Positions 2,990 through 58,494 of a stretch of 64,000 nt of DNA are shown piece by piece (position 1 is the stretch's first letter; every line of letters starts with the position of its first letter). Location: the IMG/VR virus record IMGVR_UViG_3300024262_006558, positions 324,595-388,594 of that record; one strand, 5' to 3'. A program made the translations under genes and the position numbers. Below the pieces are notes generated by a model. That model saw only the letters and a list, made by a program, of their open reading frames with translations, was not told the origin of the DNA and searched no databases.

Positions 2990-3033
2990 ATGTTAAAATT
3001 ACTGTTTTTATTTCAATTAGACAAGCTTTTGTG

Positions 3034-7681: not shown

Positions 7682-8791
7682 TTATCTTACTTCTACCCCT
7701 AAATTGTCAGTAATAGAATTTTCTATCCTATTATGAATCTCATTTATTTCATCATCTGTTAAAGTTCTGTTTGGAGATCTATATACCAATGAATAACAAA
7801 GAGAGGTTCTATTCGTCTTAGGGTTTGTGAATTTATCAGATAAACTGATAGATTCAATCAAATCATCTCCTTCAGCTCTAGAAATTTCCATGAATTCATT
7901 CTCATGGAATCCTTCAGGAGTCCAGAAAGATATATCTCTATTAACTGGAGGGTATTTAGAATATTCTTTGAACTCAACTACTTGACCTGATGCGAATTGC
8001 TTCAAGAATCTTTCGTCTTCAGTCCAAAAATATCTAATATCCTTTATGTTGAATAAAATCATAGCAAGCCTTTCAAGCCCTAGGCCGAAAGCCCAAGCTT
8101 GTTTACCACCTAACCCAATAGAGGACATTATATCTGGCTCTACAGTTCCACCTCCTAATACTTCTACCCATTTATCTTCTCCACCCATATTGAATAGCAC
8201 CTCTATTTCAGTTGAATCATAGGTGAATGGGAATTCTGTTTCTGGATCGAACTTTTCTTTCTCATATTCTTCTGCAGACAACTCTGCTTTAATAGAATCA
8301 TCAAATTCTTTATTATCTTTGAATCTATATTGTTGTCCAGGGAAAAGTGTCTCCACCATTTTAGACATCCAATGCCTTAATTCTTGAGCTGGATCTTTAT
8401 CAGCAAGACAGAACCCGTCAATCTGATGGAATACTGGAGCGTGCGTAGCGTCTACGGTGTCTTTACGGTAAACATCTCCAGTAACTAAATATTTAGTGTG
8501 ACCTGATTTTACCAAAGGTACTAAGTGAGCAGTCATTTGAGTACGAAGAACCGTTTCTTCATCTTCATAGTAAGTATCTGTAATAGCTCTTGCAGGATGG
8601 TCTTTAGGAACCAGTAACATGTCGAAGCAATGAGCTGCAGGAACTTTAGGTTCTAACCCTTCAATTTTCTCGAACCCTTCAAATACTTCGTAAATTTTTC
8701 TTTTAACAATCTCTAATGGATGGTTCTTTTGTTGGTAGAGATTTCTACCTAGTTTTTGCTTAATAGCATCTGTGATGTTGTTCATACTCAA
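7682..8791 (-). CDS. Phenylalanyl-tRNA synthetase, monomeric mitochondrial (FARS2)-like alpha plus FDX-ACB chimera
   Basis: DHPARAITDTYY, LRTQMTAH, GDVYRKDTVDATHAPVFHQ, FPFT, EVLGGG, AFGLGLERLAM, then YPPVNRDISFW anticodon-binding domain. Confidence 0.92.
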   Translation of the reverse strand: MSMNNITDAIKQKLGRNLYQQKNHPLEIVKRKIYEVFEGFEKIEGLEPKVPAAHCFDMLLVPKDHPARAITDTYYEDEETVLRTQMTAHLVPLVKSGHTKYLVTGDVYRKDTVDATHAPVFHQIDGFCLADKDPAQELRHWMSKMVETLFPGQQYRFKDNKEFDDSIKAELSAEEYEKEKFDPETEFPFTYDSTEIEVLFNMGGEDKWVEVLGGGTVEPDIMSSIGLGGKQAWAFGLGLERLAMILFNIKDIRYFWTEDERFLKQFASGQVVEFKEYSKYPPVNRDISFWTPEGFHENEFMEISRAEGDDLIESISLSDKFTNPKTNRTSLCYSLVYRSPNRTLTDDEINEIHNRIENSITDNLGVEVR

Positions 8792-9625: not shown

Positions 9626-10030
9626 TTATTTCAAGACTTTTTTAACATTTAAAGAATCTAAACAACATTTTTGAGGTTTAGTATAAACTCTGAATGTAAC
9701 ATATTCTAAACCATCTTCATCAAGTTCTATTTCAACATATTTACAAATACCTCTTATGCATACATTATGATAAATTAAGGTGCAATCATTTGGACCAGTC
9801 CAATCTTCAGTATTAGGTGCTCTTCCCATAATTTCCACTACTTCATTATAACTAAGTCCTCTCTTGTTTAAAGAAAAAGCAAGTTCTCCTTCTTCATAAG
9901 GAGTGTAATCGGAATCAATTCCTATTAATTTTTCAGCTTTATAATGAGGTAGTTTATTGTCATTACATGAAAACCCAAACAACACACCTATCATTAAACC
10001 AATTATTGCAATTACTGTTCTTTGAGCCAT
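9626..10030 (-). CDS. Putative lipoprotein
   Basis: Hydrophobic signal ending FGFSC; GLSYNEVVEIMGRAP resembles SmpA/OmlA-type fold. Confidence 0.5.
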   Translation of the reverse strand: MAQRTVIAIIGLMIGVLFGFSCNDNKLPHYKAEKLIGIDSDYTPYEEGELAFSLNKRGLSYNEVVEIMGRAPNTEDWTGPNDCTLIYHNVCIRGICKYVEIELDEDGLEYVTFRVYTKPQKCCLDSLNVKKVLK

Positions 10031-11589
10031 AATAATACATTTTTAATTCTAAATATTGTTTCATCTGATCCTATTAATTCCATAATTGGAAATAATTCAG
10101 GTCCGCCAGTTTCTTGTGTTATAATATACCTTAATGGTTTTAACACATCACCAAACTTCACACCAAGGTCATCACAAGTAATCTTTAAGTAATTCTTTGT
10201 TTGAGCAGTTGGGACCGTTGTATAGTCTTCATAAAAATCAGTAAGAACCTCTACAACATTATCAGTCAATTGCTTTTTAAGAATGCTCCAATCATAATCT
10301 TCTTTATTAAGTGGAAGGAATAAATACTGAGATTTTGGCATCAGATCAGTTATAAACTCTACTCGATCCTTAAGGAGATCGCAAGCTTTAGTAGCGTATA
10401 CTTCATTAAGCCTGGATAATGTAAAGTGAGGCTTATAAACCTCACCCCAACTTTCAACCTCATATTTCCAGTCTTTCAATAAAGTTTCAGCTAATACACT
10501 TGAATCAGTTTGGCGAATATACTTTCCATTCATCCAAGTAATCTTTTCATTGTCATAGCGAATACCTGCTTTGTTAACTCTATCCATAGAGAATGCATTT
10601 ACCAATTCTTCAAAGGTAAAAATCTCTTGATCGTTGCCAGGGTTCCACCCTAACATCGCCATAAAATTTACTACAGCATCTTTATCATAACCTCCCTCTT
10701 TATAACCTAAACATGTAATTTGTTGTTTCTTTTTATCGTCATACACTTGACATTGAAAAGGATAGATAGGAAAACCTAATCTATGAGCCGTTCTCTTACT
10801 TAATTTACCTTTACCATCAGGGTTTAAAACTAATGGCAAGTGGGCAAATTCAGGAATATCCCACCCTAAAGCTTCGTACAACATAATATGTAATGGAGTG
10901 GATGGTAACCACTCTTCCCCTCTTATCACATGAGATATCTTCATAAGATGATCATCTATGACAGCAGCTAAGTGATACGTTGGAACACCATCAGATTTCA
11001 TAAGCACTTTATCATCCACTTCATTAGAATTGAATGTGACTTTATCTCTGACCATGTCAGTAAATGTAATTTCTTTATCTTTTGTAACTTTAAATCTTAT
11101 TACGTAAGACGCGCCAGAAGAAATTGCTTTTTTAACATCGCTTTCCCCCATTGTAAGAGAATTAGACATCAAGTCTCTAGTGTTATGATCATATTTAGGC
11201 ATAGGATTAATATCCGTTTTAAGATCTTCTCTCATAGCATTCAATGCCGCAGGAGTATCAAAAGCGTAATAAGCATGTCCAGATTTGATTAACTCTTGAA
11301 CATATACCTCATATAACTCCAACCTCTCAGATTGTATATATGGACCATCAAGGCCGCCTATGCCTGGACCTTCATCAAACTCTATACCGCACCAATCCAT
11401 AGATTTCTTGATATATTCTTGAGCTCCTTCTACGAGCCTTGAACTATCTGTATCTTCTATTCTGAGTATTAATTCACCACCATATTTAGCTGCGAACAAA
11501 TAGTTGTAAAGGGCTGTTCTTATATTACCACAATGTATTGGACCTGTCGGGCTTGGAGCAAATCTAGTTCTAATGCGTTTTTCTTCCAT
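10012..11589 (-). CDS. gltX: Glutamyl-tRNA synthetase
   Basis: RFAPSPTGPIHCGN (HIGH-like), RIEDTD, VIRGEEW, KLSKR (KMSKS-like). Confidence 0.95.
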   Translation of the reverse strand: MEEKRIRTRFAPSPTGPIHCGNIRTALYNYLFAAKYGGELILRIEDTDSSRLVEGAQEYIKKSMDWCGIEFDEGPGIGGLDGPYIQSERLELYEVYVQELIKSGHAYYAFDTPAALNAMREDLKTDINPMPKYDHNTRDLMSNSLTMGESDVKKAISSGASYVIRFKVTKDKEITFTDMVRDKVTFNSNEVDDKVLMKSDGVPTYHLAAVIDDHLMKISHVIRGEEWLPSTPLHIMLYEALGWDIPEFAHLPLVLNPDGKGKLSKRTAHRLGFPIYPFQCQVYDDKKKQQITCLGYKEGGYDKDAVVNFMAMLGWNPGNDQEIFTFEELVNAFSMDRVNKAGIRYDNEKITWMNGKYIRQTDSSVLAETLLKDWKYEVESWGEVYKPHFTLSRLNEVYATKACDLLKDRVEFITDLMPKSQYLFLPLNKEDYDWSILKKQLTDNVVEVLTDFYEDYTTVPTAQTKNYLKITCDDLGVKFGDVLKPLRYIITQETGGPELFPIMELIGSDETIFRIKNVLLWLKEQ

Positions 11590-17208: not shown

Positions 17209-17470
17209 ATCTATCTTTTAAAACTTTTTTCTCACCATACCGATCTGTAAACACAATCAAGTCTGCTCTATTCATTCTATTCCTAGAGTCTACAGCCACA
17301 CCGCTTGTAAAGAACGACATACCTGTAGACCTATGGAAGTTAAAGTCATATAAATTAATATCATTTATATGCTTATATCTAGACCCTTTCACCAAATCAT
17401 TCTCAGTTAAATATATTGGTTCCCTATATGGTCTCCACTGTTTGACTGTGTGGTAAAAACGCTTTCTCAT
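17189..17470 (-). CDS. MRKxFY-leader protein; C-terminus resembles SF4 helicase/RecA-fold C-terminal strands
   Basis: MRKRFY; RADLIVF...KVLKDRFGD. Confidence 0.55.
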   Translation of the reverse strand: MRKRFYHTVKQWRPYREPIYLTENDLVKGSRYKHINDINLYDFNFHRSTGMSFFTSGVAVDSRNRMNRADLIVFTDRYGEKKVLKDRFGDYGQ

Positions 17471-18840
17471 ACAGAATAAAACTCTTTACGGATATTAAGA
17501 AGTATTTCTTTACCTTTTTTAGGATCAGAATCTTTAGGCAAATCACTTATAGCATAAGCTTTATCTGATTGCTTCATAAGATCTTCCGCTCCAGACAATA
17601 TAGTATCATAGTCTTGAGCTCCTTTGCGTATCGCTAAGAGCTCTTCTCTATTGTCACGCCTAACGTTAACACCTTTGCCTTCAGCGATCTCTAGAGACAT
17701 CTGTAGAAGCCTATAGCAATGCATCATGTTCTTGGTATCATAACCTTTCTTAGCTGAATCTTTATAACGCTCAGGATTTCTTTCTTCAACCCAGTCCCAA
17801 TATTTTTTATGAGACTTGCAGTGTTGAGTATAAGCATCCTTTGAATAAACAAAGATTGCTACAGACTCTTCAGACTTAGGAACAGAAGAAGATCTAAGAG
17901 AATTAGAAGTCTCATGCATTATCCCTTTGTATCCAAGGCCCATGAATTCACCAGCGTCCTTAGCAATTTTCTTTCTTTCTTTTCTATCCTCTTCGGGAAC
18001 CATTTCAGAAAACATGTTATGCGCAGACCAATCATAAAACAATGCGAAATTATCTTTTGCATTAGGTATACTTACTATACCGCAAAACTTTTGATCATAA
18101 CCATAATGTTCTAATACCTTCTTTAATGGAATAGTCTTATGACCTTCTATTGCATAACAGAAGTCCAATGGAGTTTTTCTAGCTTTTGGCATCTCATTAA
18201 CAATCATTTTGTTTTGCCCTCTAGCTTTTGATATTTGCTTTTTAGCATATCCACCAAATGAATCTTTACATCTTTTTGACAAGAAATCTTTAGCATTAAT
18301 TTGATCTAGTAACTCAGATTTAAATAACACACAATCATCTGGCATGTTTAACAACTCCAACACTGTTGGGTTGTTGCTAGTCAACATATCCATATACTTT
18401 CTAATTTCAAAATAAGAGTAATCATCTTTCTTTCTCAAGAAAGTTTGAATTGGCTCTATACCATCATCACTTACAACAGAAACTCCTTCCTTGTTTTCTA
18501 TAGGAAGTTTGTCTACAATTACATTTTTATATCCTACATCAGAACATTGCTCTTTTAGAAGGTTATGTAATGCTTCTTGCATTTCATCTCTATTTTCCTG
18601 GTTCTCGCTTTTCTCTTTGAATTCTTCGAAAACGTCTTTTACTTGTTTCTTTACAGTACTTTCAATTACGTCTGGATATTCACCTAACAGTACATCATCT
18701 AACTCAGCTACAAAGATACCTCTTCTATCCTCATCTGATGTTTCTATAGCCGTGTTATAAGCGTGTGATCCAGCTATAACTTCTAACAAAAGAAGTTTAT
18801 TCTCTTTGATATACTCTATAGTGTATTTGTCTTTTGACAT
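17467..18840 (-). CDS. DNA polymerase beta-superfamily nucleotidyltransferase (RlaP/YcgL-like)
   Basis: GSHAYNTAIETSDEDRRGIF; NPTVLELL; GYDTKNMMHCYRLL. Confidence 0.8.
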   Translation of the reverse strand: MSKDKYTIEYIKENKLLLLEVIAGSHAYNTAIETSDEDRRGIFVAELDDVLLGEYPDVIESTVKKQVKDVFEEFKEKSENQENRDEMQEALHNLLKEQCSDVGYKNVIVDKLPIENKEGVSVVSDDGIEPIQTFLRKKDDYSYFEIRKYMDMLTSNNPTVLELLNMPDDCVLFKSELLDQINAKDFLSKRCKDSFGGYAKKQISKARGQNKMIVNEMPKARKTPLDFCYAIEGHKTIPLKKVLEHYGYDQKFCGIVSIPNAKDNFALFYDWSAHNMFSEMVPEEDRKERKKIAKDAGEFMGLGYKGIMHETSNSLRSSSVPKSEESVAIFVYSKDAYTQHCKSHKKYWDWVEERNPERYKDSAKKGYDTKNMMHCYRLLQMSLEIAEGKGVNVRRDNREELLAIRKGAQDYDTILSGAEDLMKQSDKAYAISDLPKDSDPKKGKEILLNIRKEFYSV

Positions 18841-24624: not shown

Positions 24625-25151
24625 GAGTTATTAACTCCTAAAATTTTATTGTTTACCATATCGATCTCAAACCCATTTTTAACTAATGCTTCTTTAAACT
24701 CTTCTAAGCATCCATGAATATCCCCGACAACAATCCACTCTTTTGTTTCATCTAATTTATGAGTCAACAAAGTTTCATGTGATGTAGAAACTATTTCATT
24801 ATCGATATCCTTTATGAAAATCTCAATCTCTCCTTTTTTCTTAGAGTTCTTTCCAGAAAGTAAAGCCTCATCAAATATCAAAGAAACTAAGTTGTAGTTA
24901 TTTCTATCCGCAATACTTTTGATACCTTTTTTTGTTAAACCATCTTCAGCAATTACAAAATAAGTATTCTTAGGATATTCGGTTGATTTCTCAATCTCAT
25001 CCAAATCACCTAAAATAACAACAGAAGAATCATCTAATGATTTTAATGCTGGATGCAGACGATCTTTTACGAAAGTATCTCTTTCTACATCTGTAGCTCC
25101 AACTAACATTATGATGCTGTGTACTGGAATATCGATTTTTTGTTTCTTCAT
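24621..25151 (-). CDS. N-terminal half of split Pnkp-like protein (degenerate kinase plus GDIHG motif)
   Basis: IPVHSIIMLVGATDVERDTF resembles Pnkp kinase start with a dead P-loop; ends VGDIHGCLEEFKEAL. Confidence 0.75.
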   Translation of the reverse strand: MKKQKIDIPVHSIIMLVGATDVERDTFVKDRLHPALKSLDDSSVVILGDLDEIEKSTEYPKNTYFVIAEDGLTKKGIKSIADRNNYNLVSLIFDEALLSGKNSKKKGEIEIFIKDIDNEIVSTSHETLLTHKLDETKEWIVVGDIHGCLEEFKEALVKNGFEIDMVNNKILGVNNS

Positions 25152-25663: not shown

Positions 25664-26614
25664 TTATTTTTTGAAAAATGTGTCAGCATGAACAAATCCC
25701 ATCCCAAGTCTTGTAGCTGTCGTTTTATCACTGGTCTGGTCTCCTACGAAAATACTGTTTTCAATGTCTATCTCATCACGCATCACATATTTCATAACCA
25801 TACCCATTTGTGGCTTTCTACAATAACAAGAAGGTGGAACATTATGTGGACAATAAGATATTTCGATGTCAATACCAAGTTGTCTATTAGTTTCTTCAAA
25901 ACATTCTATAATGTCTTCTTCAGGTATATTATTTCTATCGATCCCACTTTGGTTGGAAATACCATAAACTTTATATCCCTTGGTAATGAAGTCTTTGATT
26001 ATTTCTGTTCTATTTTCAAGAACAACAACTTCATCTGTTTTGATTGGGAACTTATAAGGTGAACCATCAGGGACATCTCTTACTGTACCATCATAGTCCA
26101 GAAATAAAGCTTTTTGAGTAAATCTTTGATTGTATCTTCTGACAAACTTTCTTTTTTCGATGTTAGAAAACCCTTCTTTCAATTCGGGTTTTTCAAATTG
26201 TTTTTTCATTTTAAAAAGAACAACAATTGGAAACATGTTAGGATCTTTTGATGCTTCTTTATGGTCAGCAATGTCTTTTGCCACCATAAATAATTCACCA
26301 TATCTATCCCACATCCGAGTTAATGCATTGATTTGACAATCTTCTGTTGTGGTAGTCTGCCAAACACATTCGATCTCTACATTGTTTTTGATAGCTAACT
26401 CAATAAATGGTTCTCTAGAAACCTTAGTAGTAAAAGTAGCATCTAAAATAACAGAATTATCATCGTCTATGTGTTTTTGTAGTTCTGGTAATAGGTCAGC
26501 TATAAGACCGCCTGAAACATCCCTACTTAATATATCTAATGATTCGTATTTTGCTTCTTTACAAATACTAGATTTCCCACTTGCGGGGAAACCGCATAAC
26601 ATAGTTATTTTCAT
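25664..26614 (-). CDS. Polynucleotide 5'-kinase / HAD 3'-phosphatase (PNKP-like)
   Basis: GFPASGKS, LSRD, ILDAT; DYDGT, SNQ, CYCRKP, FVGD. Confidence 0.85.
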   Translation of the reverse strand: MKITMLCGFPASGKSSICKEAKYESLDILSRDVSGGLIADLLPELQKHIDDDNSVILDATFTTKVSREPFIELAIKNNVEIECVWQTTTTEDCQINALTRMWDRYGELFMVAKDIADHKEASKDPNMFPIVVLFKMKKQFEKPELKEGFSNIEKRKFVRRYNQRFTQKALFLDYDGTVRDVPDGSPYKFPIKTDEVVVLENRTEIIKDFITKGYKVYGISNQSGIDRNNIPEEDIIECFEETNRQLGIDIEISYCPHNVPPSCYCRKPQMGMVMKYVMRDEIDIENSIFVGDQTSDKTTATRLGMGFVHADTFFKK

Positions 26615-31434: not shown

Positions 31435-32220
31435 CTATTCTTCTAATTGAAATAATTTATTTTCATACACAGGAACTATGCTTGATAAGAATGTCCAATC
31501 CTTAGAGAATATTGGAGGCTCCAACGCTTCCCATCTAGACCTTTTAACTCCAGGCTCTTTTTCATATTCTTTTCTAGCGATCACGGTCCCTCTTTTAAAA
31601 CGAACCTCATAATCATTCCAATTAATCCCTTTCTCAAGCATTAACTTATCTTGAATCTGACCCCCATTCTTGCCTTGCAACTCCTTGTGAGAGAACTGAG
31701 CTTGACCCGCCATTGAAACTGAGTTTCTTGTACAGTCTTGCTGTCTCCAAAGAAAGTAGTTTAATACATCATTTGGATTTGGTATTAGAAAAGCTCTAGA
31801 ATCAAAGTTAGCCCAAATAAAAGAGTCTAACTTGAAACCTTCCTCGGAAATAGCTCTCTTAAGTCTAAGGTTGTTAAAGATAGTTGTTGCTAATGAAGCA
31901 GCTATAGAATTGATCTTATCCACTCTACCATCATATAATTGTTGACTCTTAATGTTCTCAAAATCAGTGAACAATAAAGATATCTCATCAGATTGAGTAT
32001 ATGCCATTCTACAACATTGCAGTTCAGAACATAACTGTCTAGCCGTCTCAATCATATCGTCAGATAAACCAGAATCAAATGGCTTTTCAACCTTTTTAGT
32101 GTACTTTGAAAATTTTTTCCCGTCTAATCTAACTAAAACATAGCTGCGAGGAGACAGTTTAATAGTGGAGGCTGATTCGTATTGTTTTATACGTTCACCT
32201 AATGTTATTTCTTTACTCAT
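31435..32220 (-). CDS. tRNA(His) guanylyltransferase Thg1-like protein
   Basis: RLDGKKFS, YTQSDEISL, FDSR, WRQQDC.RNS. Confidence 0.92.
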   Translation of the reverse strand: MSKEITLGERIKQYESASTIKLSPRSYVLVRLDGKKFSKYTKKVEKPFDSGLSDDMIETARQLCSELQCCRMAYTQSDEISLLFTDFENIKSQQLYDGRVDKINSIAASLATTIFNNLRLKRAISEEGFKLDSFIWANFDSRAFLIPNPNDVLNYFLWRQQDCTRNSVSMAGQAQFSHKELQGKNGGQIQDKLMLEKGINWNDYEVRFKRGTVIARKEYEKEPGVKRSRWEALEPPIFSKDWTFLSSIVPVYENKLFQLEE

Positions 32221-49021: not shown

Positions 49022-49023
49022 TG

Positions 49024-49107
49024 TACTCGAAGAGGGAGTCGAACCCTCATGCCCATAAGGGCGCTAGATCCTAAGTCTAGTGCGTCTACCAATTCCGCCA
49101 TCCGAGC
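49024..49107 (-). tRNA. tRNA-Leu(TAG), canonical type II
   Basis: CTAGA-CT TAG GA-TCTAG, long V arm, A73. Confidence 0.92.
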
Positions 49108-49213
49108 AAGTAAATAAATTTAAACTTTTTTTATGATATTATCAAATTATGCTAATACAAAAAAGCGAAGACTCACGCCCTCGCTTTTAAACTACTATTA
49201 TTTCAAAATGTGA

Positions 49214-49618
49214 TTATTTCTTCTTCAGCATTCTATAAATAGGTTCGAAACCTATTCCAAACGCTAATCTCAATATAACAAAGTCAATAACTAGATTATC
49301 TGTAATAGGTTGAAATAACACCATTCCAGCAAAGAAACATAAAAACATTGCAGCTTGAGCAAAATGCCACCCATCCGTTAATGAGACAAACACTGTCGCG
49401 CTTAATGGAAAACGTTCTTTATATTCTGGAGTAAATTTCCATAAATAATACCATCGCTTTTTATATTCTTTAACTCTTCTTCCCCCTGAGTTGATCTTCC
49501 ACTTTTTCTTCCAACTTTTGGATTTATTCCAGTAGTTGTTTAAGAAACCGTCTTCGGAGCTAACGTCCATTATGGCGTTTGCAGCTCCAGCAAATAATGC
49601 AAATAAAATTGACAACAT
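49214..49618 (-). CDS. Membrane protein
   Basis: Hydrophobic segments; TDGWH motif. Confidence 0.6.
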   Translation of the reverse strand: MLSILFALFAGAANAIMDVSSEDGFLNNYWNKSKSWKKKWKINSGGRRVKEYKKRWYYLWKFTPEYKERFPLSATVFVSLTDGWHFAQAAMFLCFFAGMVLFQPITDNLVIDFVILRLAFGIGFEPIYRMLKKK

Positions 49619-49626
49619 GTTTTTAT

Positions 49627-49812
49627 TTATAAATATGTTGTGTTTTTTGTGCCTCCAGAATTATAATATGTACTTCCAGAATTATAATATGTACTTCCAG
49701 AATTAGGTATATAAGGATCTATACACTCTCTTTCACAACTAAACAATGTCGGGATAAAAATTGTCCCCAATGTTACAATTGATGCTTTTTTTAAAAAATC
49801 TCTCCTATTCAT
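49627..49812 (-). CDS. Small Tat-signal lipoprotein
   Basis: MNRRDFLKK...LFSC; NSGSTYY repeats. Confidence 0.65.
   Translation of the reverse strand: MNRRDFLKKASIVTLGTIFIPTLFSCERECIDPYIPNSGSTYYNSGSTYYNSGGTKNTTYL
49654..49704. repeat. 21-nt tandem repeat inside Tat lipoprotein gene
   Basis: ccagaattataatatgtactt x2 plus partial copy. Confidence 0.8.
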
Positions 49813-49837
49813 AGTATATAAATATACTTATTTTTTG

Positions 49838-49917
49838 TACCCCTGGAGAGACTCGAACTCTCAAAAGCTCTGGGTTTGAACCAGTTATCTGTACCGATTT
49901 GAATAAGCCACAGGGGC
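49838..49917 (-). tRNA. Atypical tRNA with CAA (Leu) anticodon, short V arm, enlarged D region
   Basis: GCCCCTG/CAGGGGT acceptor, CTGG-TT CAA AC-CCAG, GAGAG-TTCGAGT-CTCTC. Confidence 0.75.
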
Positions 49918-49922
49918 GGGAT

Positions 49923-50165
49923 TTAAATTCTTCTTATTAGTTTTTTAAACTTAACACTTATTACTTTGATAGGGTTTATTTTATATGCATGAAAATACAA
50001 CCCAAAAAAGCAAGCTGATAACAGGTAAAAAAAGAAGGTTGTACTCCAGTAAGAATCTGTTAACTTCATCAGCATTGCGAATGCTATATCGTATCCTAGA
50101 GGGTTGAAGAATGTCCCCATTACTAATGCTAGTGTTCCGATCGTTTTTCTGTTCACCTTCATCAT
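49923..50165 (-). CDS. Small membrane protein
   Basis: FFNPLGYD...two TMs. Confidence 0.6.
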   Translation of the reverse strand: MMKVNRKTIGTLALVMGTFFNPLGYDIAFAMLMKLTDSYWSTTFFFYLLSACFFGLYFHAYKINPIKVISVKFKKLIRRI

Positions 50166-50202
50166 CCATTGTTTTCATATTTCGTTTAACATTTATTTAG
50201 TG

Positions 50203-50282
50203 TACCCCTGGAGAGACTCGAACTCTCAAAAGATCTGGGTCTAAGCCAGTTAGCTGTACCGATTTGCATAATCCACAGGGGC
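50203..50282 (-). tRNA. Atypical tRNA with TAG (Leu) anticodon, short V arm
   Basis: Paralog of 49838..49917; loop CT TAG AC. Confidence 0.75.
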
Positions 50283-50350
50283 ATATAATTATAAATAGTC
50301 GTGACTTGTATCCACGGATGTAACCTCTCAACTTTGCGTTCTATTCATTG

Positions 50351-50433
50351 TACCTCAGACAGGATTTGAACCTGCACGCCCATTACGGGCACTGGATTTT
50401 AAGTCCAGCGTGTCTGCGTTCCACCACCGAGGC
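50351..50433 (-). tRNA. tRNA-Leu(TAA), type II
   Basis: CTGGA-CT TAA AA-TCCAG, long V arm, A73. Confidence 0.9.
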
Positions 50434-50446
50434 GTGATGTTTGTTG

Positions 50447-50526
50447 TACCCCTGGCGAGACTCGAACTCGCAATAGCTCTGGGTTTAAGCCAGTTATCTG
50501 TACCGATTTGAATAAGCCACAGGGGC
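50447..50526 (-). tRNA. Atypical tRNA with TAA (Leu) anticodon, short V arm
   Basis: Paralog; loop CT TAA AC; T stem GCGAG/CTCGC covaries. Confidence 0.75.
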
Positions 50527-50531
50527 ATGCT

Positions 50532-50744
50532 TTATTTTTTTACTACCTTTTCAAAAAAGCTAACGGGCATGTCTCCGTTAATTTTCATAAACTCTTCTTC
50601 CGTTAAGCAATCACCATTAGCTTGCCAAGCCGCTTGGCAGAAATCTCTATATTCCCTACCATACTTTCTAGTGATATCCTTAAAGCTGATCTTAAAGTTG
50701 GATTCATCCGACTCAAAGTCAATAATTTCAAATATTCTTTTCAT
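50532..50744 (-). CDS. Hypothetical protein (start MKRIFE; longer ORF call overlaps tRNA)
   Basis: ATG 3 nt after tRNA-Leu(AAG) discriminator. Confidence 0.55.
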   Translation of the reverse strand: MKRIFEIIDFESDESNFKISFKDITRKYGREYRDFCQAAWQANGDCLTEEEFMKINGDMPVSFFEKVVKK

Positions 50745-50746
50745 AG

Positions 50747-50834
50747 TACCTCTACCCAGACTCGAACTGGGAACGTTTCTCATGTTTGCCACGGGTTCTT
50801 AGCCCGCCAGCTTTGCCAATTTGCTCATAGAGGT
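50747..50834 (-). tRNA. tRNA-Leu(AAG), A34
   Basis: GCGGG-CT AAG AA-CCCGT, long V arm, A73. Confidence 0.85.
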
Positions 50835-50843
50835 ATGAATAAA

Positions 50844-50962
50844 TGTTTCAAACAGGACTCGAACCTATATTGTTACGTACCAATCAAGTCAGAGTCAGAG
50901 CCTCCTTCAATATGAGGAAACTAACTTCCAACCTGTGCGCCTACCAATTTCGCCATTGAAAC
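50844..50962 (-). ncRNA. Type II tRNA-like RNA with ~34-nt insertion in anticodon loop
   Basis: GTTTCAA/TTGAAAC acceptor, Leu-like D arm, CAGGT/ACTTG stem enclosing 41 nt, V arm, T arm. Confidence 0.7.
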
Positions 50963-50967
50963 ATTTG

Positions 50968-51040
50968 AGCCTATGACAGGAATCGAACCTGCGACATCTT
51001 CCACACCAAGGAAGTGCTCTACCGACTGAGCTACATAGGC
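50968..51040 (-). tRNA. tRNA-Thr(GGT), G37
   Basis: CTTCC-TT GGT GT-GGAAG. Confidence 0.9.
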
Positions 51041-51045
51041 ATTAG

Positions 51046-51181
51046 TGGAACAGCGGGGAATCGAACCCCTTGCAAGATTTACATTTGACACCTTAAGATA
51101 TCAACAATACTCACTAGGATTTATCACCACTTAACCAAGAGCGATCTTAAGCTCACTAGAGGCTGCAGATAAAACTGCTCC
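51046..51181 (-). ncRNA. 136-nt tRNA-like RNA resembling a tmRNA tRNA-like domain (acceptor plus T arm, no D stem)
   Basis: GGAGCAG/CTGTTCC-A, GGGG-TTCGATT-CCCC, TGCAG/TTGCA closing stem. Confidence 0.65.
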
Positions 51182-51187
51182 GTTTAG

Positions 51188-51259
51188 AGCTACATGCAGG
51201 AATCGAACCCGCCTCTGAAGCTTACAAGGCTCCTGCATCACCGACAATGCTTATGTAGC
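51188..51259 (-). tRNA. tRNA-Thr(TGT)
   Basis: GGAGC-CT TGT AA-GCTTC. Confidence 0.9.
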
Positions 51260-51272
51260 AAGAATAATTTTG

Positions 51273-51403
51273 GGGAGGGGGCTGGACTCGAACCAGCGAC
51301 CTTCTGCTTAACAGGCAATTAGAAGGAAGACAAAACATAGCCTTATTTTTAAGGGGATCATTAAATCTTTTAAGATGCTCTAACCAACTGAGCTACCCCT
51401 CCC
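51273..51403 (-). tRNA. tRNA-Asn(GTT) interrupted by 56-nt insertion in 5' strand of anticodon stem
   Basis: TC[56 nt]TGC-CT GTT AA-GCAGA; intact D, T and acceptor arms; G-1 and C73. Confidence 0.78.
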
Positions 51404-51417
51404 ATTTATTATACTTG

Positions 51418-51505
51418 AGGTACTAGTAAGATTCGAACTTACGATGGAGGATCTCTCCTCGACAGATTTGCAGCCTGCCCCTTTCGCCCACTCAGGCATA
51501 GTACC
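51418..51505 (-). tRNA. tRNA-Cys(GCA) with long variable arm
   Basis: GCAGG-CT GCA AA-TCTGT; V arm GAGGA-GAGA-TCCTC; U73. Confidence 0.85.
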
Positions 51506-51516
51506 ATATATTTTTG

Positions 51517-51590
51517 TGGAGGCACTCGGTAACGATCCGAGATCTCTGGGACTTCAATCCAGCGCATAGACCAATCTTTGCTATGCCTCC
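51517..51590 (-). tRNA. tRNA-Phe(GAA) copy 1, G37
   Basis: CTGGA-TT GAA GT-CCCAG; T loop ATCGTTA. Confidence 0.85.
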
Positions 51591-51604
51591 CTATTATTTT
51601 ATTG

Positions 51605-51789
51605 TGGAGGAAGACGGAATCGAACCGCCGACCAACCCCTCCTACGGGGCCACTCTACCAAGACACCTTTTCAAAACCACCATACAACTTAAACACTTTC
51701 CAAAACCATTATTCATGACTAATGGCTAATTACTTATGTCGTTCTCTAGCTGAATCTACTCCGTTGAAATGTCACTGAGTTACTCCTCC
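51605..51789 (-). ncRNA. tRNA-like RNA with ~113-nt insertion in D loop and irregular anticodon loop (GTAGGA)
   Basis: GGAGGAG/TTCCTCC acceptor, ACTC/GAGT D stem, insert closed by GACATTT/AGGTGTC, intact T arm. Confidence 0.7.
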
Positions 51790-51846
51790 ATGGGTCCCGT
51801 TATTTTCTAGACAGCAAGCACGGGACCACACCGCTGTAAGACGTTG

Positions 51847-51921
51847 TGCTGTGTACTGGATTCGAACCAGTGATCTTCTCGGCTTCAACGAAACGCTTTA
51901 GACCAACTAAGCTAACACAGC
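51847..51921 (-). tRNA. tRNA-Phe(GAA) copy 2, G37
   Basis: TTTCG-TT GAA GC-CGAGA. Confidence 0.9.
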
Positions 51922-51928
51922 ATTTTTG

Positions 51929-52002
51929 GGTGATGGACGGGCTACGACCCCGCGACCTTTGGCGCCACAAGCCAATGCTCTACCAACTGAGCTACCACCA
52001 CC
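51929..52002 (-). tRNA. tRNA-His(GTG) copy 1, encoded G-1
   Basis: TTGGC-TT GTG GC-GCCAA; G-1:C73. Confidence 0.88.
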
Positions 52003-52071
52003 ATATTCATAAACTGAGGAATTCCTAAGTTTACGATTTGTAATACCAATACGTCAAAGAACTATTCTTTG

Positions 52072-52144
52072 GGTGTCGATGGGGTTCGAACCCTACCATC
52101 CAGATTCACAGTCTGGGACTCTCTCCAAGTGAGCTACCGACACC
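52072..52144 (-). tRNA. tRNA-His(GTG) copy 2, encoded G-1
   Basis: CCAGA-CT GTG AA-TCTGG; G-1:C73; irregular T stem. Confidence 0.85.
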
Positions 52145-52448: not shown

Positions 52449-53340
52449 TTTTAAATTTCCTTTCAAAATAATGGTATAAACACTTTATGTTCAAGTATAT
52501 AATATGAACATCATGTTGTGATTTCCTTTCAAAATAATGGTATACATACTGCGTCTAATATATTTAGGCATGCCTCAAATGTTGTGATTTCCTTTCAAAA
52601 TAATGGTATACATACTTTTCTACTCTTTATACTGAAGAAGCAAAGGGTTGTGATTTCCTTTCAAAATAATGGTATACATACTTTAAGCTTTTACAGGCCT
52701 CATCTTACGACTGTTGTGATTTCCTTTCAAAATAATGGTATACATACTATGGGTACATAGTTCCTCTCTCATACTTCGGTTGTGATTTCCTTTCAAAATA
52801 ATGGTATACATACTGCGTCTAATATATTTAGGCATGCCTCAAATGTTGTGATTTCCTTTCAAAATAATGGTATACATACTTTCGACATGAATACATCGCC
52901 TTTCAAAGTGGTTGTGATTTCCTTTCAAAATAATGGTATACATGCTGATTGAGCTTATGGGTGTTATGGATTCTTCGTTGTGATTTCCTTTCAAAATAAT
53001 GGTATAAATACTCTATCTTTGGAACAATAAACGATAAGGGGTTGTGATTTCCTTTCAAAATAATGGTATACATACTATTTGGCATCGAATTCCTGTTTGA
53101 GTGATAGTTGTGATTTCCTTTCAAAATAATGGTATACATACTATTTAAATACTTGCACATTAATATATACCCGTTGTGATTTCCTTTCAAAATAATGGTA
53201 TACATACTAAAGCCTGTTGACTATATGAGGCAACTAGTGTTGTGATTTCCTTTCAAAATAATGGTATACATACTTAAAAACAAAAAATGGCTTTTGCGAT
53301 ACTCGTTGTGATTTCCTTTCAAAATAATGGTATACATACT
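52449..53340 (-). CRISPR. CRISPR array: 13 repeats of 36 nt (52515..53340) plus a degenerate distal repeat; 30-nt spacers
   Basis: Plus-strand repeat GTTGTGATTTCCTTTCAAAATAATGGTATACATACT, period 66 (one 28-nt spacer); degenerate copy at 52449..52484 implies leader at right and minus-strand transcription. Confidence 0.97.
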
Positions 53341-53454
53341 AGGCCCTATCATAATCGATTAATAGATAGGTGATTATAAAGTATATTGAGTTAAAAAACT
53401 GGAGACTTATTATATAGTAACATATATTTACGATCAGTTTTCTCATTATAATTT
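53341..53454 (-). promoter_or_regulatory. CRISPR leader
   Basis: AT-rich 114 nt between cas6 stop and first repeat; cctatc...gatagg hairpin. Confidence 0.6.
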
Positions 53455-54183
53455 CTATTTAGCCAGGTATTGTCTATTATTTTCAATGTTGAATATTGAT
53501 CCAAACCCTATACCAGTAGAGCTTCCAATTCCAATAGCATATAAGGTATCCATAACTTTTTTATTTGCAAAAATTTCTAAATTACATTGATTTGCTATGT
53601 TAAATACTCTTTTTCCATTTATTGATTGTTTAATATCAATATGTCGAGTTCTATTTCTTTTTGATTTCCTTACTTTTACTTTAAATTTATCTAATTTCAA
53701 ATCGGAATTAACTTTACTCAACTTGTTTATAATATGCTTATGGAGCTCCTCTTCAAAATCATCATCATTTAAAGTATGTATAATGTCAGATTTATTCTTT
53801 GTGGTCTTTAAAAAAATTGGAGATAACATACCTACATGATTCCATCCATTTTTGAAATTATCTATTCTAAAATCATATCCATCATATTTCATACCATAAC
53901 ACAATTCAATCGTATTTGCATTGATAATAAGAAAATTAATTATGGCAGATATGAATTCTGCATCCAGAGATGAAACAGTAATATAGCATCCGCTACTCAT
54001 ATCTAAGAAATTCTCACCTTTAATCTTTTTTCCGCCCTGGATTGTAGATAAAGAATAGTTTGAGGATCTATCATGATAATGATTATTTTTTCCTAAACAT
54101 TTATGTAAGAAAGATATTACATGATATTGATTATTAAAAGGAACTCCCTCTTTGGTGCCTTTAAATTTAATTTTTATACGCAT
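53455..54183 (-). CDS. cas6: CRISPR-associated endoribonuclease Cas6
   Basis: C-terminal GIGSSTGIGFG loop; YSLSTIQGG; LSPI. Confidence 0.9.
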   Translation of the reverse strand: MRIKIKFKGTKEGVPFNNQYHVISFLHKCLGKNNHYHDRSSNYSLSTIQGGKKIKGENFLDMSSGCYITVSSLDAEFISAIINFLIINANTIELCYGMKYDGYDFRIDNFKNGWNHVGMLSPIFLKTTKNKSDIIHTLNDDDFEEELHKHIINKLSKVNSDLKLDKFKVKVRKSKRNRTRHIDIKQSINGKRVFNIANQCNLEIFANKKVMDTLYAIGIGSSTGIGFGSIFNIENNRQYLAK

Positions 54184-56271: not shown

Positions 56272-58494
56272 TTAAACAAATGTTTCTAACATTTTCTTAT
56301 CAATTAACCCATAAGTTTCGCTATAAACATTATTATAAGTGATGTATGGAGTGTTGCTAAACACTGCACATCTCCTGAAAGAATCTATTGTCATCTTATC
56401 GTTTTTGTATTTATTCCCATAATCAAACCTATCATCGCCTTTTAAAGATTTAATAGTCTTCTTTATGTTTGACAATGTTTTACTGGTCTCTTTAAAATGC
56501 TGATCAAATCCATATGTAACACTTTTAGTGAAAGGGTCTGACCAAGTACCACACTCTCTCTTGCATATATAAAATACTTGCGCATTTGAACATCTCAACT
56601 TATTAGATCCAGATTTAATAATATCACTTTCAGATTTAGAAGACTTTGTATACACAAAGCTAATTTTTTTCAAATTAGCTAAAGACTCTCTGTGTACATT
56701 ACTTAAATACTTACTGAAAGCATTTACTTCTTTCACGGAATACTCATTATATAACTCATAGAATTCATCTAGAGTTATATACTTTATGTCTTTTGATTCA
56801 AGAAATGTATACCAACTATCCATTAACTCTGTATTGTATAATTTGGAAACAGTTTCCTTCTCTATATGATTGTGCGATTTAAAGATGTTTATAGTACACT
56901 CCTCTGATATATCACCCCAGCGATTGACTCTACCAATTCTTTGAGCTGTAGCTAAATGAGACATAACAGATTCATATAAATGATTGAAGCTTATATCGAT
57001 AGAAGCTTGTATTATTAACGTAGAGCATAAAGAATTCTTTACTATATTTCTTGAGCTTTTTTTATTGTATGTTTTATAGATAGAATCAAACATCTCTTCT
57101 TTTTTCTTATTTTCAAATTTGCTATGAAATAAGTCTAATTTATTATTCTCAAATTTAAATCTTTGAGAATTTGAAACATTATTAAAAACATATAAAGAGT
57201 TATCTTTAACTTCTACATTACCATAATCTATTAAGCTTACTTTATACTCTTTAGAGTGAGCTGAGGGATAGTGCGTATTTTCAGATGGTAATATTTTAGT
57301 ACATTTTAATGTTGGATCTATTATAGAGTGTATATTTATTGGAGTAGCACTAAGAAGCATAGTCTTGCTATTGGTAAACATTGTTCTCATCTTAAGCATA
57401 TTTGTGAACAAGGAAAAGTAAGCTTCTCTAGTTATGAACTCATGGTATTCATCGAAAACAACATCACATTTTGCAATATAATAAAGCCTTGATAAAATAG
57501 GGTTTTTTAGGTTTGGAGATAGAAAATTATCTATATTGGTAATTATAATATCTGAATTAAACTCTTCTGTATCATTGTGATTTTTCTTTTTGGTTTCTGA
57601 TGTTAAAAATAACTCAACTTTTAAATTGCAATTTATATTTTCCAACTCAGACAAAATGCTATAATAAACAGATTCAGCAACAGTGTTTCTAGGGCATACC
57701 CAAATGAGTTTTTTGTCAGAAGATTTTATATTCCACAATAAACCAGTTAAAGTTTTTCCAAATCCTGCAGCTGCATTAACTATTAAATTTTTTGATTTAT
57801 CTTCTGATATTTTTATTTGATTGTCTAACCTTTCATTCTTATCGAAAGTATCTAGATTATATAAGGGATTTTCTCTATATATATTTGATTGAGAGCTTGT
57901 GTCGATCATTCTATCTGCAGATACTAGAATAGTTCTGAAGAACATTTTTTTGATATCTTCATTTATATCATCTCTAAGCACGTTTTCACCGTAATATTTT
58001 GGCAACACATAATCAACAGTTACTTCTTTTAGATAATCTTTACTTAATACCGTTGTTAAATACTTCTTCATAATATTTTTATCACTAATAGATATGGTAT
58101 CTAAAATAGATTCAGAAGTAGGTAAAGTTTTAGGATAATTTTTTATTCCATGATGATATAAAACACAATCAGTCACAAAATGTTTATAGCTAGAATCAAA
58201 TTTTAAATATTTCTCCAAAAAAGCCCATCCAATTTCATTATGTAAAAAAACATCTTTCCTAGTTTCATTTTTGCTTTTTAAATTTTCCTGAAATGCTGTT
58301 GTGCATTTACCTATATCATGCAATAAAGCTGATACTTTTACAATATCGATAAAAACTTTTTTCTCATCTGCATCAAAATAGTAATCACTTTCTTCTAAAT
58401 ACATTTCTTCTAATATATACAAAGCTCTCTCTGCAACATATGAAGAGTGTTCTATTAATGTGACACCATTGCTTTTTGCTAAAATTTTTTTCAT
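56272..58494 (-). CDS. cas3: Cas3 HD nuclease-helicase (stand-alone, no Cas2 fusion)
   Basis: LLHDIGK, HN..G, YHHG, SADR; AAAGFGKT, DEYH, SATP, QASIDIS, QRIGRVNRWG. Confidence 0.93.
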   Translation of the reverse strand: MKKILAKSNGVTLIEHSSYVAERALYILEEMYLEESDYYFDADEKKVFIDIVKVSALLHDIGKCTTAFQENLKSKNETRKDVFLHNEIGWAFLEKYLKFDSSYKHFVTDCVLYHHGIKNYPKTLPTSESILDTISISDKNIMKKYLTTVLSKDYLKEVTVDYVLPKYYGENVLRDDINEDIKKMFFRTILVSADRMIDTSSQSNIYRENPLYNLDTFDKNERLDNQIKISEDKSKNLIVNAAAGFGKTLTGLLWNIKSSDKKLIWVCPRNTVAESVYYSILSELENINCNLKVELFLTSETKKKNHNDTEEFNSDIIITNIDNFLSPNLKNPILSRLYYIAKCDVVFDEYHEFITREAYFSLFTNMLKMRTMFTNSKTMLLSATPINIHSIIDPTLKCTKILPSENTHYPSAHSKEYKVSLIDYGNVEVKDNSLYVFNNVSNSQRFKFENNKLDLFHSKFENKKKEEMFDSIYKTYNKKSSRNIVKNSLCSTLIIQASIDISFNHLYESVMSHLATAQRIGRVNRWGDISEECTINIFKSHNHIEKETVSKLYNTELMDSWYTFLESKDIKYITLDEFYELYNEYSVKEVNAFSKYLSNVHRESLANLKKISFVYTKSSKSESDIIKSGSNKLRCSNAQVFYICKRECGTWSDPFTKSVTYGFDQHFKETSKTLSNIKKTIKSLKGDDRFDYGNKYKNDKMTIDSFRRCAVFSNTPYITYNNVYSETYGLIDKKMLETFV

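Follow-up and report, generated by a model that had tools for sequence, protein, structure and literature searches.

Three 80-nt genes with leucine anticodons lie within the 64,000-nucleotide stretch of DNA analysed here (the window), which is the last 64 kb of the 388,594-bp IMG/VR record G000, a huge T4-like phage, and we infer that they are probably working tRNA-Leu genes of an unusual architecture that is conserved among phages and borne by them. The architecture can be read directly from the sequences, while their work as leucine tRNAs is a probability argued from comparison with other tRNAs. The genes are:

49838-49917, minus strand: tA, probable non-canonical tRNA-Leu of 80 nt, anticodon CAA; 108.9 bits with the family model R1
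50203-50282, minus strand: tB, probable non-canonical tRNA-Leu of 80 nt, anticodon TAG; 108.8 bits with R1; variants A11-U50 and G16-C30
50447-50526, minus strand: tC, probable non-canonical tRNA-Leu of 80 nt, anticodon TAA; 109.8 bits with R1; T-stem variant C57-G71

Length is counted from G1 to the discriminator A, and numbering starts at G1. In each gene the acceptor stem has 7 bp, opens with G1.U72 and ends in front of the discriminator A; the T stem is of 5 bp and its loop is UUCGAGU, and the 7-nt anticodon loop contains U33. CCA is not encoded, the trailer of tA after the discriminator A being CAAAA, and a 3′ trailer in which N73-C is followed by an A-rich stretch is common to all genes of the surrounding tRNA cluster, including these three. 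An earlier reading of the same DNA (the original prediction) had proposed three 80-nt paralogs with CAA, TAG and TAA anticodons on a shared body, and this is what we find, all three on the minus strand and with bodies about 90% identical. The compensatory T-stem change that it reported (GAGAG/CTCTC versus GCGAG/CTCGC) corresponds to pair 57-71, and outside the loops every difference among the three genes is a paired, complementary change of this kind. The variable region is indeed short (6 nt, no arm). The proposed enlargement of the D region holds in the sense that 26 nt separate the acceptor and anticodon stems, but the feature is more aptly seen as 5 nt inserted upstream of the U8 equivalent and paired with the variable loop. 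Given the paired differences among the copies, and the same build in 12 other phage genomes or contigs, the 80-nt genes are more than a chance resemblance. The span from tA to tC (49838-50526) also contains a type II (long variable arm) Leu(TAA) gene and an 80-aa open reading frame (ORF).

A conserved family with an additional helix

The family comprises 15 distinct sequences, each exactly 80 nt long, from 13 phage genomes or contigs, two of which are cultured phages. Every anticodon belongs to leucine (UAG in 10 members, CAA in three, UAA in one and CAG in one). A phage whose proteins are 73-79% identical to those of the window (L089) holds a TAG copy identical to tB (L089:76-155) and a new CAA copy; Rhizobium phage RHph_I1_18 has a single TAG copy and Synechococcus phage BUCT-ZZ01 has two, TAG and CAA. 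The CAG member (L004) is on a viral contig (G001) with 57% GC and more than 26 tRNA genes. It was the one outside member found in viral contigs by the first exact-pattern scans with the window's core, which found none in metagenomes and genomes, and a pattern of invariant columns derived from 8 members then gave 9 matches, all of them true, one being L004 again and the others adding 8 further IMG/VR contigs. The scan matches L063, L064, L071 and L072, together with 54 other loci, were discarded as chance matches, and when the tRNA cluster was compared with the phage collection by Megablast no match was returned. Extension along the related Logan contig stopped shortly before the tRNA cluster of that contig.

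When scored with the family model, members reach 70-110 bits and type I (short variable loop) tRNA-Leu genes at most 56, and the nearest non-members are Leu tRNAs. In 151 sampled genomes of Bacteroidia, the likely host group, the best score was 49.9 bits, from ordinary or type I tRNAs, and the architecture is thus not standard within that sample.

The family is collinear with type I tRNA-Leu except for 5 additional nucleotides after the acceptor stem and before the U8 equivalent, and one in the variable loop. These extra bases pair, positions 9-12 with 49-52, forming a helix beside the anticodon stem that we term Px. The basics of the cloverleaf (7-bp acceptor stem, 5-bp T stem, loop with U33, G18G19) are present and conserved in the 15 sequences, with helices that covary; the D hairpin has an 11-nt loop typical of tRNA-Leu, including the GG, the T arm has 5 bp and a UUCGA loop, and the anticodon loop carries U33 and A37. 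What is not kept is the 2-nt connector between acceptor and D stems of tRNAs in general, as 7 nt precede the D stem of the family, which itself consists of only two Watson-Crick pairs plus U.U.

We tested this structure on an alignment of the 15 sequences (A9), considering 22 pairs in total: acceptor 1-7/73-79, Px 9-12/49-52, D 16-17/29-30, anticodon stem 34-37/45-48 and T 56-60/68-72. Standard pairs occupy 330 of the 330 pair cells, and both sides change in 13 of the 22 pairs, including three of the four in Px. None of 500 shuffles attains any of the pairing measures, and partner columns that are slid out of register pair at 29%-56%. The composition of the Px pairs is:

Pair 9-52: GU in 14, GC in 1
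Pair 10-51: AU in 9, GC in 6
Pair 11-50: CG in 12, AU in 3
Pair 12-49: UG in 9, UA in 5, AU in 1

Many of the 15 sequences come from related cyanophage-type contigs, so independent events are fewer than the counts of pair cells imply; the more robust part of the evidence is the counts of pair types, together with the occurrence of the family in three separate host groups.

In the window's subgroup position 33-49 (canonical 27-43) is A.A and 12-49 is U-A, so that with the 27-43 pair lost and 12-49 formed instead, a 4-bp anticodon stem is continued by a 4-bp Px. In cyanophage-type members 33-49 is C-G, and Px is therefore perhaps of 3 bp. An initial model with an extended D stem (U12-A33, U13-A32, A14-U31) and a 2-bp Px fitted four or five sequences and was abandoned: pair 12-33 forms in 5 of the 15, being A12 against A33 in the Rhizobium phage and U12 against C33 in the cyanophage-type members. 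Pairs 13-32 and 14-31 can still form, but neither shows a compensatory change. Taken together, the alignment suggests that the family is structurally best seen as derived from type I tRNA-Leu. A helix backed by covariation at this position bears on how far the core of a tRNA can be rebuilt and still serve RNase P, leucyl-tRNA synthetase (LeuRS), EF-Tu and the ribosome.

Probable leucine identity, charging and codon supply

Several independent lines of sequence comparison point to a leucine identity for the family. The determinants used by bacterial LeuRS are A73, A14, A15-U48 and the G18G19 elbow, the anticodon not being read (PMC6614811). All of these sequence determinants are present: none of the 15 members departs from A80 (equivalent to A73), A19 and A20 (A14 and A15), U55 (U48) or G23G24 (G18G19), nor from the U8-like U13 and the whole A18-A20 run. 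The window also holds canonical type II Leu genes, of which Leu(TAG) and Leu(TAA) had been recognised originally and a third, Leu(AAG), had gone unmentioned. These and two ORFs that help to define gene order are:

49023..49107, minus strand: canonical type II tRNA-Leu(TAG), with G1.U72 and A73
50350..50433, minus strand: canonical type II tRNA-Leu(TAA), with G1.U72 and A73, between tC and tB
50746..50834, minus strand: canonical type II tRNA-Leu(AAG)
49923..50165, minus strand: 80-aa ORF between tB and tA; relative L089 has an 82-aa ORF in this place
49214..49618, minus strand: conserved small membrane protein ORF of 134 aa, a synteny anchor in relatives

The D loop of Leu(AAG), AAAUUGGCAAA, nearly equals that of the family, AAAUCGGUACA. 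Within the cluster G1.U72 is confined to Leu genes, being present in all three odd ones and in two of the three of type II. Furthermore, a single body bearing varied Leu anticodons requires a charging enzyme that ignores the anticodon. It is established that the canonical synthetases acting independently of the anticodon are LeuRS, AlaRS and SerRS (PMC11028032). As C3-G77 (C3-G70) is invariant, with no G3:U70 and no long arm anywhere in the family, and as A73 never varies, AlaRS and SerRS can be set aside.

Gene order gives a similar picture. In the related phage L091 the order is Leu(TAA), Leu(TAG), Leu(CAA), an ORF, an RNA ligase gene and Leu(TAG), where all the tRNAs are type II, and in the window it is Leu(TAA), tB(TAG), an ORF, tA(CAA), ORFs and Leu(TAG); tB and tA thus occupy the slots of type II Leu(TAG) and Leu(CAA) in related phages. 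In the three closest relatives (L089-L091) the 134-aa ORF lies just downstream of the Leu tRNA genes and just upstream of the RNA ligase gene; its family shares a W-rich motif (WYYLW...YKERF...TDGWH) and the protein looks like a membrane protein. More distant homologs of this ORF (L093-L099) have neither family members nor Leu tRNA genes nearby. The 134-aa ORF has no Pfam or PHROG match, and for the small ORFs lying among the tRNA genes these two collections gave nothing useful.

Four other members (L126, L127, L128 and L131) are in contigs with 10-24 tRNA genes each, where ARAGORN finds a type II Leu(TAA) and no other Leu(TAG), and the UAG-bearing family member is the only Leu tRNA reading CUN codons. 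In the window's phage leucine makes up 7.8% of codons (TTA 44%, CTT 23%, TTG 14% and CTA 12% of these), and its six Leu tRNA genes cover all four. The suggestion that the phage holds a second set of Leu tRNAs is therefore supported, by the Leu anticodons and A73 in 15 of 15 members, the Leu-type D loop, the synteny and the cases of a sole CUN reader.

The phage genome encodes no member of PF00133 (the Leu/Ile/Val synthetases) or of PF01743 (PolyA_pol, the CCA-adding family), so host enzymes must charge and finish these tRNAs. The transcripts would be processed by RNase P and at the 3′ end, and CCA would then be added by the host enzyme. Host LeuRS, blind to the anticodon, would leucylate them by means of A73 and the Leu-type elbow (A14, A15-U48, G18G19), and the charged tRNAs would read UUR codons (CAA and UAA) and CUN codons (UAG) as leucine. 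There is a precedent in Streptomyces coelicolor, where a type I tRNA-Leu(CAA) is leucylated by the organism's own LeuRS (PMC6614811), and the statement in the original prediction that bacterial tRNA-Leu is type II was in this respect too strong. If host LeuRS enzymes do charge the family, the view that most bacterial LeuRS accept only type II tRNAs needs revision. The phage or close kin are present in sequencing runs of several studies; one metatranscriptome contig matches 50242-50432 exactly, which takes in Leu(TAA) together with the 5′ half of tB; a second spans 50579-50933.

Standard tools mostly miss these genes. ARAGORN makes no call for tA, tB or tC in its default mode, and calls all three as Leu in its mitochondrial mode (-mt), the sole ARAGORN mode to do so. 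With the Rfam tRNA model (RF00005, gathering threshold 29 bits), tC scores 33.9 bits in a 5-kb search or 27.4 alone, while tB (20.8 bits) and tA (19.7 bits) give partial matches below the threshold. The GenBank records of RHph_I1_18 and BUCT-ZZ01 carry no annotation at the family loci, which are MN988519.1 9263-9342 in the former, a phage of R. phaseoli, and ON615601.1 122324-122403 and 116566-116645 in the latter. There is thus an annotation gap, in which a conserved class of phage tRNA goes mostly unseen by the two finders run (ARAGORN in default mode and the Rfam tRNA model), and arguments on phage tRNA repertoires and codon usage have been made without a Leu(CUN) reader in these genomes.

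Reasons for the build and alternative explanations

Why a phage should carry such tRNAs is a separate question. Leucine decoding by the family would be independent of the long variable arm and the canonical core of type II tRNA-Leu, which is the weakest step in the scheme, and the family tRNAs would then withstand factors, from the host or a competitor, by which type II Leu tRNAs are inactivated. Factors with the relevant preference exist, as the toxin MenT3 requires the long variable arm (PMC11541572) and human SLFN11 prefers type II tRNAs (as cited in PMC13462974). Bacterial Schlafens, considered as the selective agent, find no direct support in that role, since they are described as cleaving the anticodon arm or the T loop, with no type II preference reported (PMC13056530, PMC13462974). 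The phage has a tRNA repair set consisting of Pnkp (polynucleotide kinase-phosphatase), RlaP, a Thg1-like protein and RNA ligase(s); a Tpt1/KptA-like gene was seen in a syntenic relative only, the window not having been searched for one, and NADAR and PARG-like genes occur in the phage, the relative or both. Escape from a nuclease is thus plausible, and defence as its motive is something that we infer. A wider proposal, which we offer tentatively and ourselves think somewhat unlikely, is that the family is a natural tRNA architecture in its own right, that Px, in which a longer acceptor-D connector pairs with the variable loop, takes the place of the long arm, that the family spread in phages of at least three bacterial phyla by immunity to host or rival systems recognising the arm or core of type II tRNAs, and that the same pressure explains the reverse oddities in which Cys, Gln, Met, Asn and Lys tRNAs bear long arms.

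A number of observations weigh against our interpretation of the genes as working leucine tRNAs with a build of this purpose. The Streptomyces type I tRNA-Leu was left uncharged by LeuRS of other bacteria (PMC6614811), and charging by host LeuRS is accordingly not assured. Decoding tRNAs do not usually have a 4-bp anticodon stem, an A37 following G36 (without m1G37) or a C38, with which a tRNA is no substrate of MiaA. In folding energy the proposed structure does not stand out (z -1.15 to -1.34), and candidate structure models differ by less than 4 kcal/mol. The RNA support consists of assembled metatranscriptome contigs, which could be DNA carry-over, and expression of the tRNAs is to that extent putative. 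No host nuclease or toxin targeting type II tRNA-Leu is identified for these phages, and the window keeps its type II Leu(TAG) and Leu(TAA), which would be superfluous under simple replacement.

The alternative that best survives is that these are ordinary leucine decoders, a neutral or merely stabilising type I variant kept for codon usage and with no role in defence. This is quite possible, if on balance doubtful. Leucine is among the most used amino acids of the phage, six Leu tRNA genes cover its codons, and in other phages a family member simply occupies the UAG slot. The D stem is weak enough, with its two Watson-Crick pairs and U.U, for the extra helix to be purely structural, in which case Px would only offset this weakness and the lost 27-43 pair of the window's subgroup. 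Set against this, the exact 80-nt build, Px, and U12, U13 and A14 (U12 in 14 of 15) are kept across very different GC contents and shared by phages of Rhizobium, of Synechococcus and of a probable Bacteroidota host, and such conservation over distant phages and hosts argues for selection on the architecture itself. Moreover, the window's phage holds the UAG and UAA anticodons twice, once per architecture.

It is improbable that the genes encode tRNA-like RNAs with no part in translation, such as decoys for a nuclease, toxin or modification enzyme directed at tRNA-Leu, or regulators of LeuRS or the stringent response. Such a role would fit the scores below threshold with standard tRNA models, the 4-bp anticodon stem and lack of the usual modification signatures at 37 and 38, the canonical Leu tRNAs with the same anticodons in the window, and the large repertoire for tRNA repair. 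It does not fit the anticodons, which over 15 sequences vary only inside the Leu box, a restriction that would be needless in RNAs that never decode. Nor does it fit the family's place as sole CUN reader in several phages with nearly full tRNA sets, or the retention of U33, the 7-nt loop, the T loop, G18G19 and A73.

The original prediction also raised the possibility that the tRNAs carry another amino acid and recode Leu codons. Charging of the family with an amino acid other than leucine, for instance by the phage PheRS or GluRS, with Leu codons partly recoded during infection, appears to us highly improbable. Its starting point was correct, in that the phage has its own PheRS, and in addition a GluRS:

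7682-8791: single-chain PheRS (tRNA-synt_2d core and FDX-ACB)
10012-11589: GluRS

The CAA and UAA anticodons are one base away from GAA, and the core architecture is unlike that of every host tRNA-Leu. The anticodon set as a whole is nevertheless unsuited to PheRS. This enzyme reads G34-A35-A36, and GluRS reads a UUC anticodon with modified U34; the GAA anticodon of tRNA-Phe is absent from all family members, and the four anticodons found on the one body (CAA, UAA, UAG and CAG) share only A35. PheRS cannot explain tRNAs with UAG or CAG anticodons, and we therefore reject recoding as the main interpretation. The other enzymes that might ignore such differences, AlaRS and SerRS, fail here too for want of G3:U70 and a long arm, and the family occurs as well in the Rhizobium and Synechococcus phages (synthetase genes were examined in the window's phage and not in those). 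In addition, an alignment of the phage GluRS to 118 bacterial homologs gave the homologous residue opposite each phage Leu codon:

TTA: n = 23, Leu share 0.65
TTG: n = 9, Leu share 0.61
CTT: n = 12, Leu share 0.47
CTC: n = 4, Leu share 0.56

The Leu codons of GluRS thus align mainly with Leu, with a conservation on par with that of Phe, Ile and Val codons; the share of Phe opposite them is at most 0.20, and Phe is never the main partner. This comparison, covering one gene, leaves room for recoding that might be low-level or stage-specific.

Finally, it is scarcely conceivable that the genes are decaying pseudogenes or tRNA-derived repeat debris, since the failure of tRNA finders, the absence of an encoded CCA and the breaks of short-read assemblies at the three copies are outweighed by the 330 of 330 pair cells kept, the 13 covarying pairs, and a length of exactly 80 nt in all 15 members across distant phages.

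The tRNA cluster of the phage and comparison with known systems

IMG/VR labels G000 a provirus, excised from the 494,080-bp metagenome contig Ga0210003_1000004, and the end of the window is the excision cut. Phage-type genes, the tRNA cluster and a CRISPR-Cas locus all lie near that boundary, so the trimming of the provirus may be wrong. The large terminase is T4-like, its nearest relative in GenBank being that of a 484-kb uncultured phage (LR756508.1) at 31.5% identity, and the GC content of the phage is about 32%. The phage GluRS is nearest (48-50%) to those of Cytophagales and other Bacteroidota, a similarity that is the one line of evidence for Bacteroidota as the probable host phylum.

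A single minus-strand cluster (49023-52144) holds every tRNA gene of the genome, with the three odd genes sitting among 12 ordinary ones. In bacteria A34 is normally restricted to tRNA-Arg(ACG); the AAG anticodon of the type II Leu gene has a counterpart in LR756508.1, a Leu(AAG) gene of 99 nt. The Phe, His and Thr tRNA genes are duplicated, one copy being divergent in each case. A perfect 21-nt tandem repeat (49654-49705, 2.5 copies) lies within a 61-aa ORF between tA and the 134-aa ORF, and short-read contigs end at it. Other features of the cluster, of its surroundings and of the rest of the genome are:

50844-50962, minus strand: tRNA with an anticodon-arm insert; Rfam 34.2 bits; ARAGORN Ser(gga) with a 36-nt intron
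51273-51402, minus strand: tRNA with an anticodon-arm insert of 67 nt; Rfam tRNA 49.3 bits; ARAGORN Gly(gcc) plus intron
51417-51505, minus strand: tRNA of type II shape (long variable arm) with Cys anticodon GCA and U73
52455-53341, 53455-54183, 56272-58494: phage-borne CRISPR-Cas locus with array, Cas6, HD-helicase Cas3 and two unassigned ORFs between Cas6 and Cas3
31435-32220, 25664-26614, 17467-18840, G000:319463-319960: further tRNA-maintenance genes

In the gene at 50844-50962 the D arm is Leu-like and the discriminator is A73. Long variable arms are found also on contig G001 (L069), which is unrelated, in tRNAs whose anticodons are those of Gln, Met, Asn and Lys, and a CTA suppressor is present there as well. 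In these phages both gain and loss of the variable arm seem to be frequent. The CRISPR array is directly beside the tRNA cluster and consists of about 12 repeats of 36 nt with a spacing of 66 nt; the ORFs listed within 52518-53205 are artefacts of the array. The domain layout of PheRS (core and FDX-ACB) resembles that of the mitochondrial enzyme. A Thg1-like guanylyltransferase, a kinase-phosphatase, RlaP and an RNA ligase also belong to the phage's set for translation and tRNA maintenance, and the Thg1-like gene adjoins two tRNA-His genes. The RNA ligase, the kinase-phosphatase and the relative's Tpt1/KptA-like 2′-phosphotransferase would together form a splicing or repair pathway.

A Leu tRNA lacking the long arm is not new in itself, as type I forms are known in mitochondria, S. 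coelicolor, phages and arrays of Bacteroidia. Short Leu tRNAs of 74-77 nt are annotated in the cultured Cellulophaga phage phi19:1 and Vibrio phage vB_ValS_X1, and others occur in tRNA arrays of 5 of the 151 sampled Bacteroidia genomes, in LR756508.1 and in G001. LR756508.1 has a 75-nt type I Leu(TAG) gene (3009-3083, L080), and also an 80-nt UAA tRNA (25067-25146, L079/L081) that ARAGORN misses; the variable loop of this tRNA is of 7 nt and its D loop is large, and its build is unlike that of the 80-nt family. In a limited search, neither a review of unusual tRNAs (PMC7609411) nor the other literature searched described a connector insertion paired to the variable loop, and this 5-nt insertion with its pairing would, within that literature, be the new element. 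The family scaffold could be useful in engineering orthogonal tRNAs, and as the host of BUCT-ZZ01, S. elongatus PCC 7942, serves as a model in genetics, the questions raised here are testable at once.

Among known tRNAs, type I tRNA-Leu is the closest in form, sharing the Leu anticodon, A73, the Leu-type D loop and the lack of a long arm. In several type I genes the variable loop and T arm (AUUUU GAGAG UUCGAGU CUCUC) hardly differ from those of the family, and type I genes are the best non-member matches of the family model (42-56 bits). They are, however, standard cloverleaves of 74-77 nt with a normal 2-nt connector and a variable loop of 4-5 nt (5 nt in these genes), whereas the family, at 80 nt, has 5 nt more in the connector, a 6-nt loop and Px. 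Bacterial type II tRNA-Leu shares A73, G1.U72 (in this phage group), the D loop AAAU(U/C)GG(C/U)A(A/C)A and, in related phages, the same genomic slots and anticodons. It differs in its long arm (more than 10 nt, a hairpin) as against a variable region of 6 nt with no hairpin, and in having 2 nt rather than 7 between acceptor and D stems; the window's anticodon stem is 4 bp. Animal mitochondrial tRNA-Leu, also type I, has a short variable loop, UAA and UAG anticodons and A73, a likeness of form for which no sequence relationship was shown; unlike it, the family keeps the elbow of G18G19 and T loop, has Px and is phage-borne.

Other natural tRNAs depart from the 7/2/4/5/5 rule in helix lengths or connectors (PMC7609411). 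In the known cases, tRNA-Sec, tRNA-Pyl and the allo-tRNAs, the acceptor/T stems are 8/5 or 9/4, the D or anticodon stem has 6 bp, or connectors are shortened. The allo-tRNAs were reportedly described by Mukai and colleagues in 2017. Whereas tRNA-Sec and allo-tRNAs combine 8/5 or 9/4 stems with a long arm, the family has 7/5 and no arm.

The nearest functional parallel is found in phage tRNAs that escape defence, such as the T5 tRNA-Lys against PARIS, a tRNA-Tyr against retron Ec78, and anticodon-loop variants (PMC10264068, PMC11464382, PMC11555353). As there, the phage isoacceptors differ from host tRNAs at features read by nucleases, and the window's phage also has repair enzymes. In those systems escape is demonstrated and lies in changes of the anticodon loop, while in the 80-nt family the difference is in the core and variable arm and the role in escape is putative; if true, escape from a defence directed at tRNA-Leu would here be the first achieved by remodelling the body of the tRNA and not its anticodon loop.

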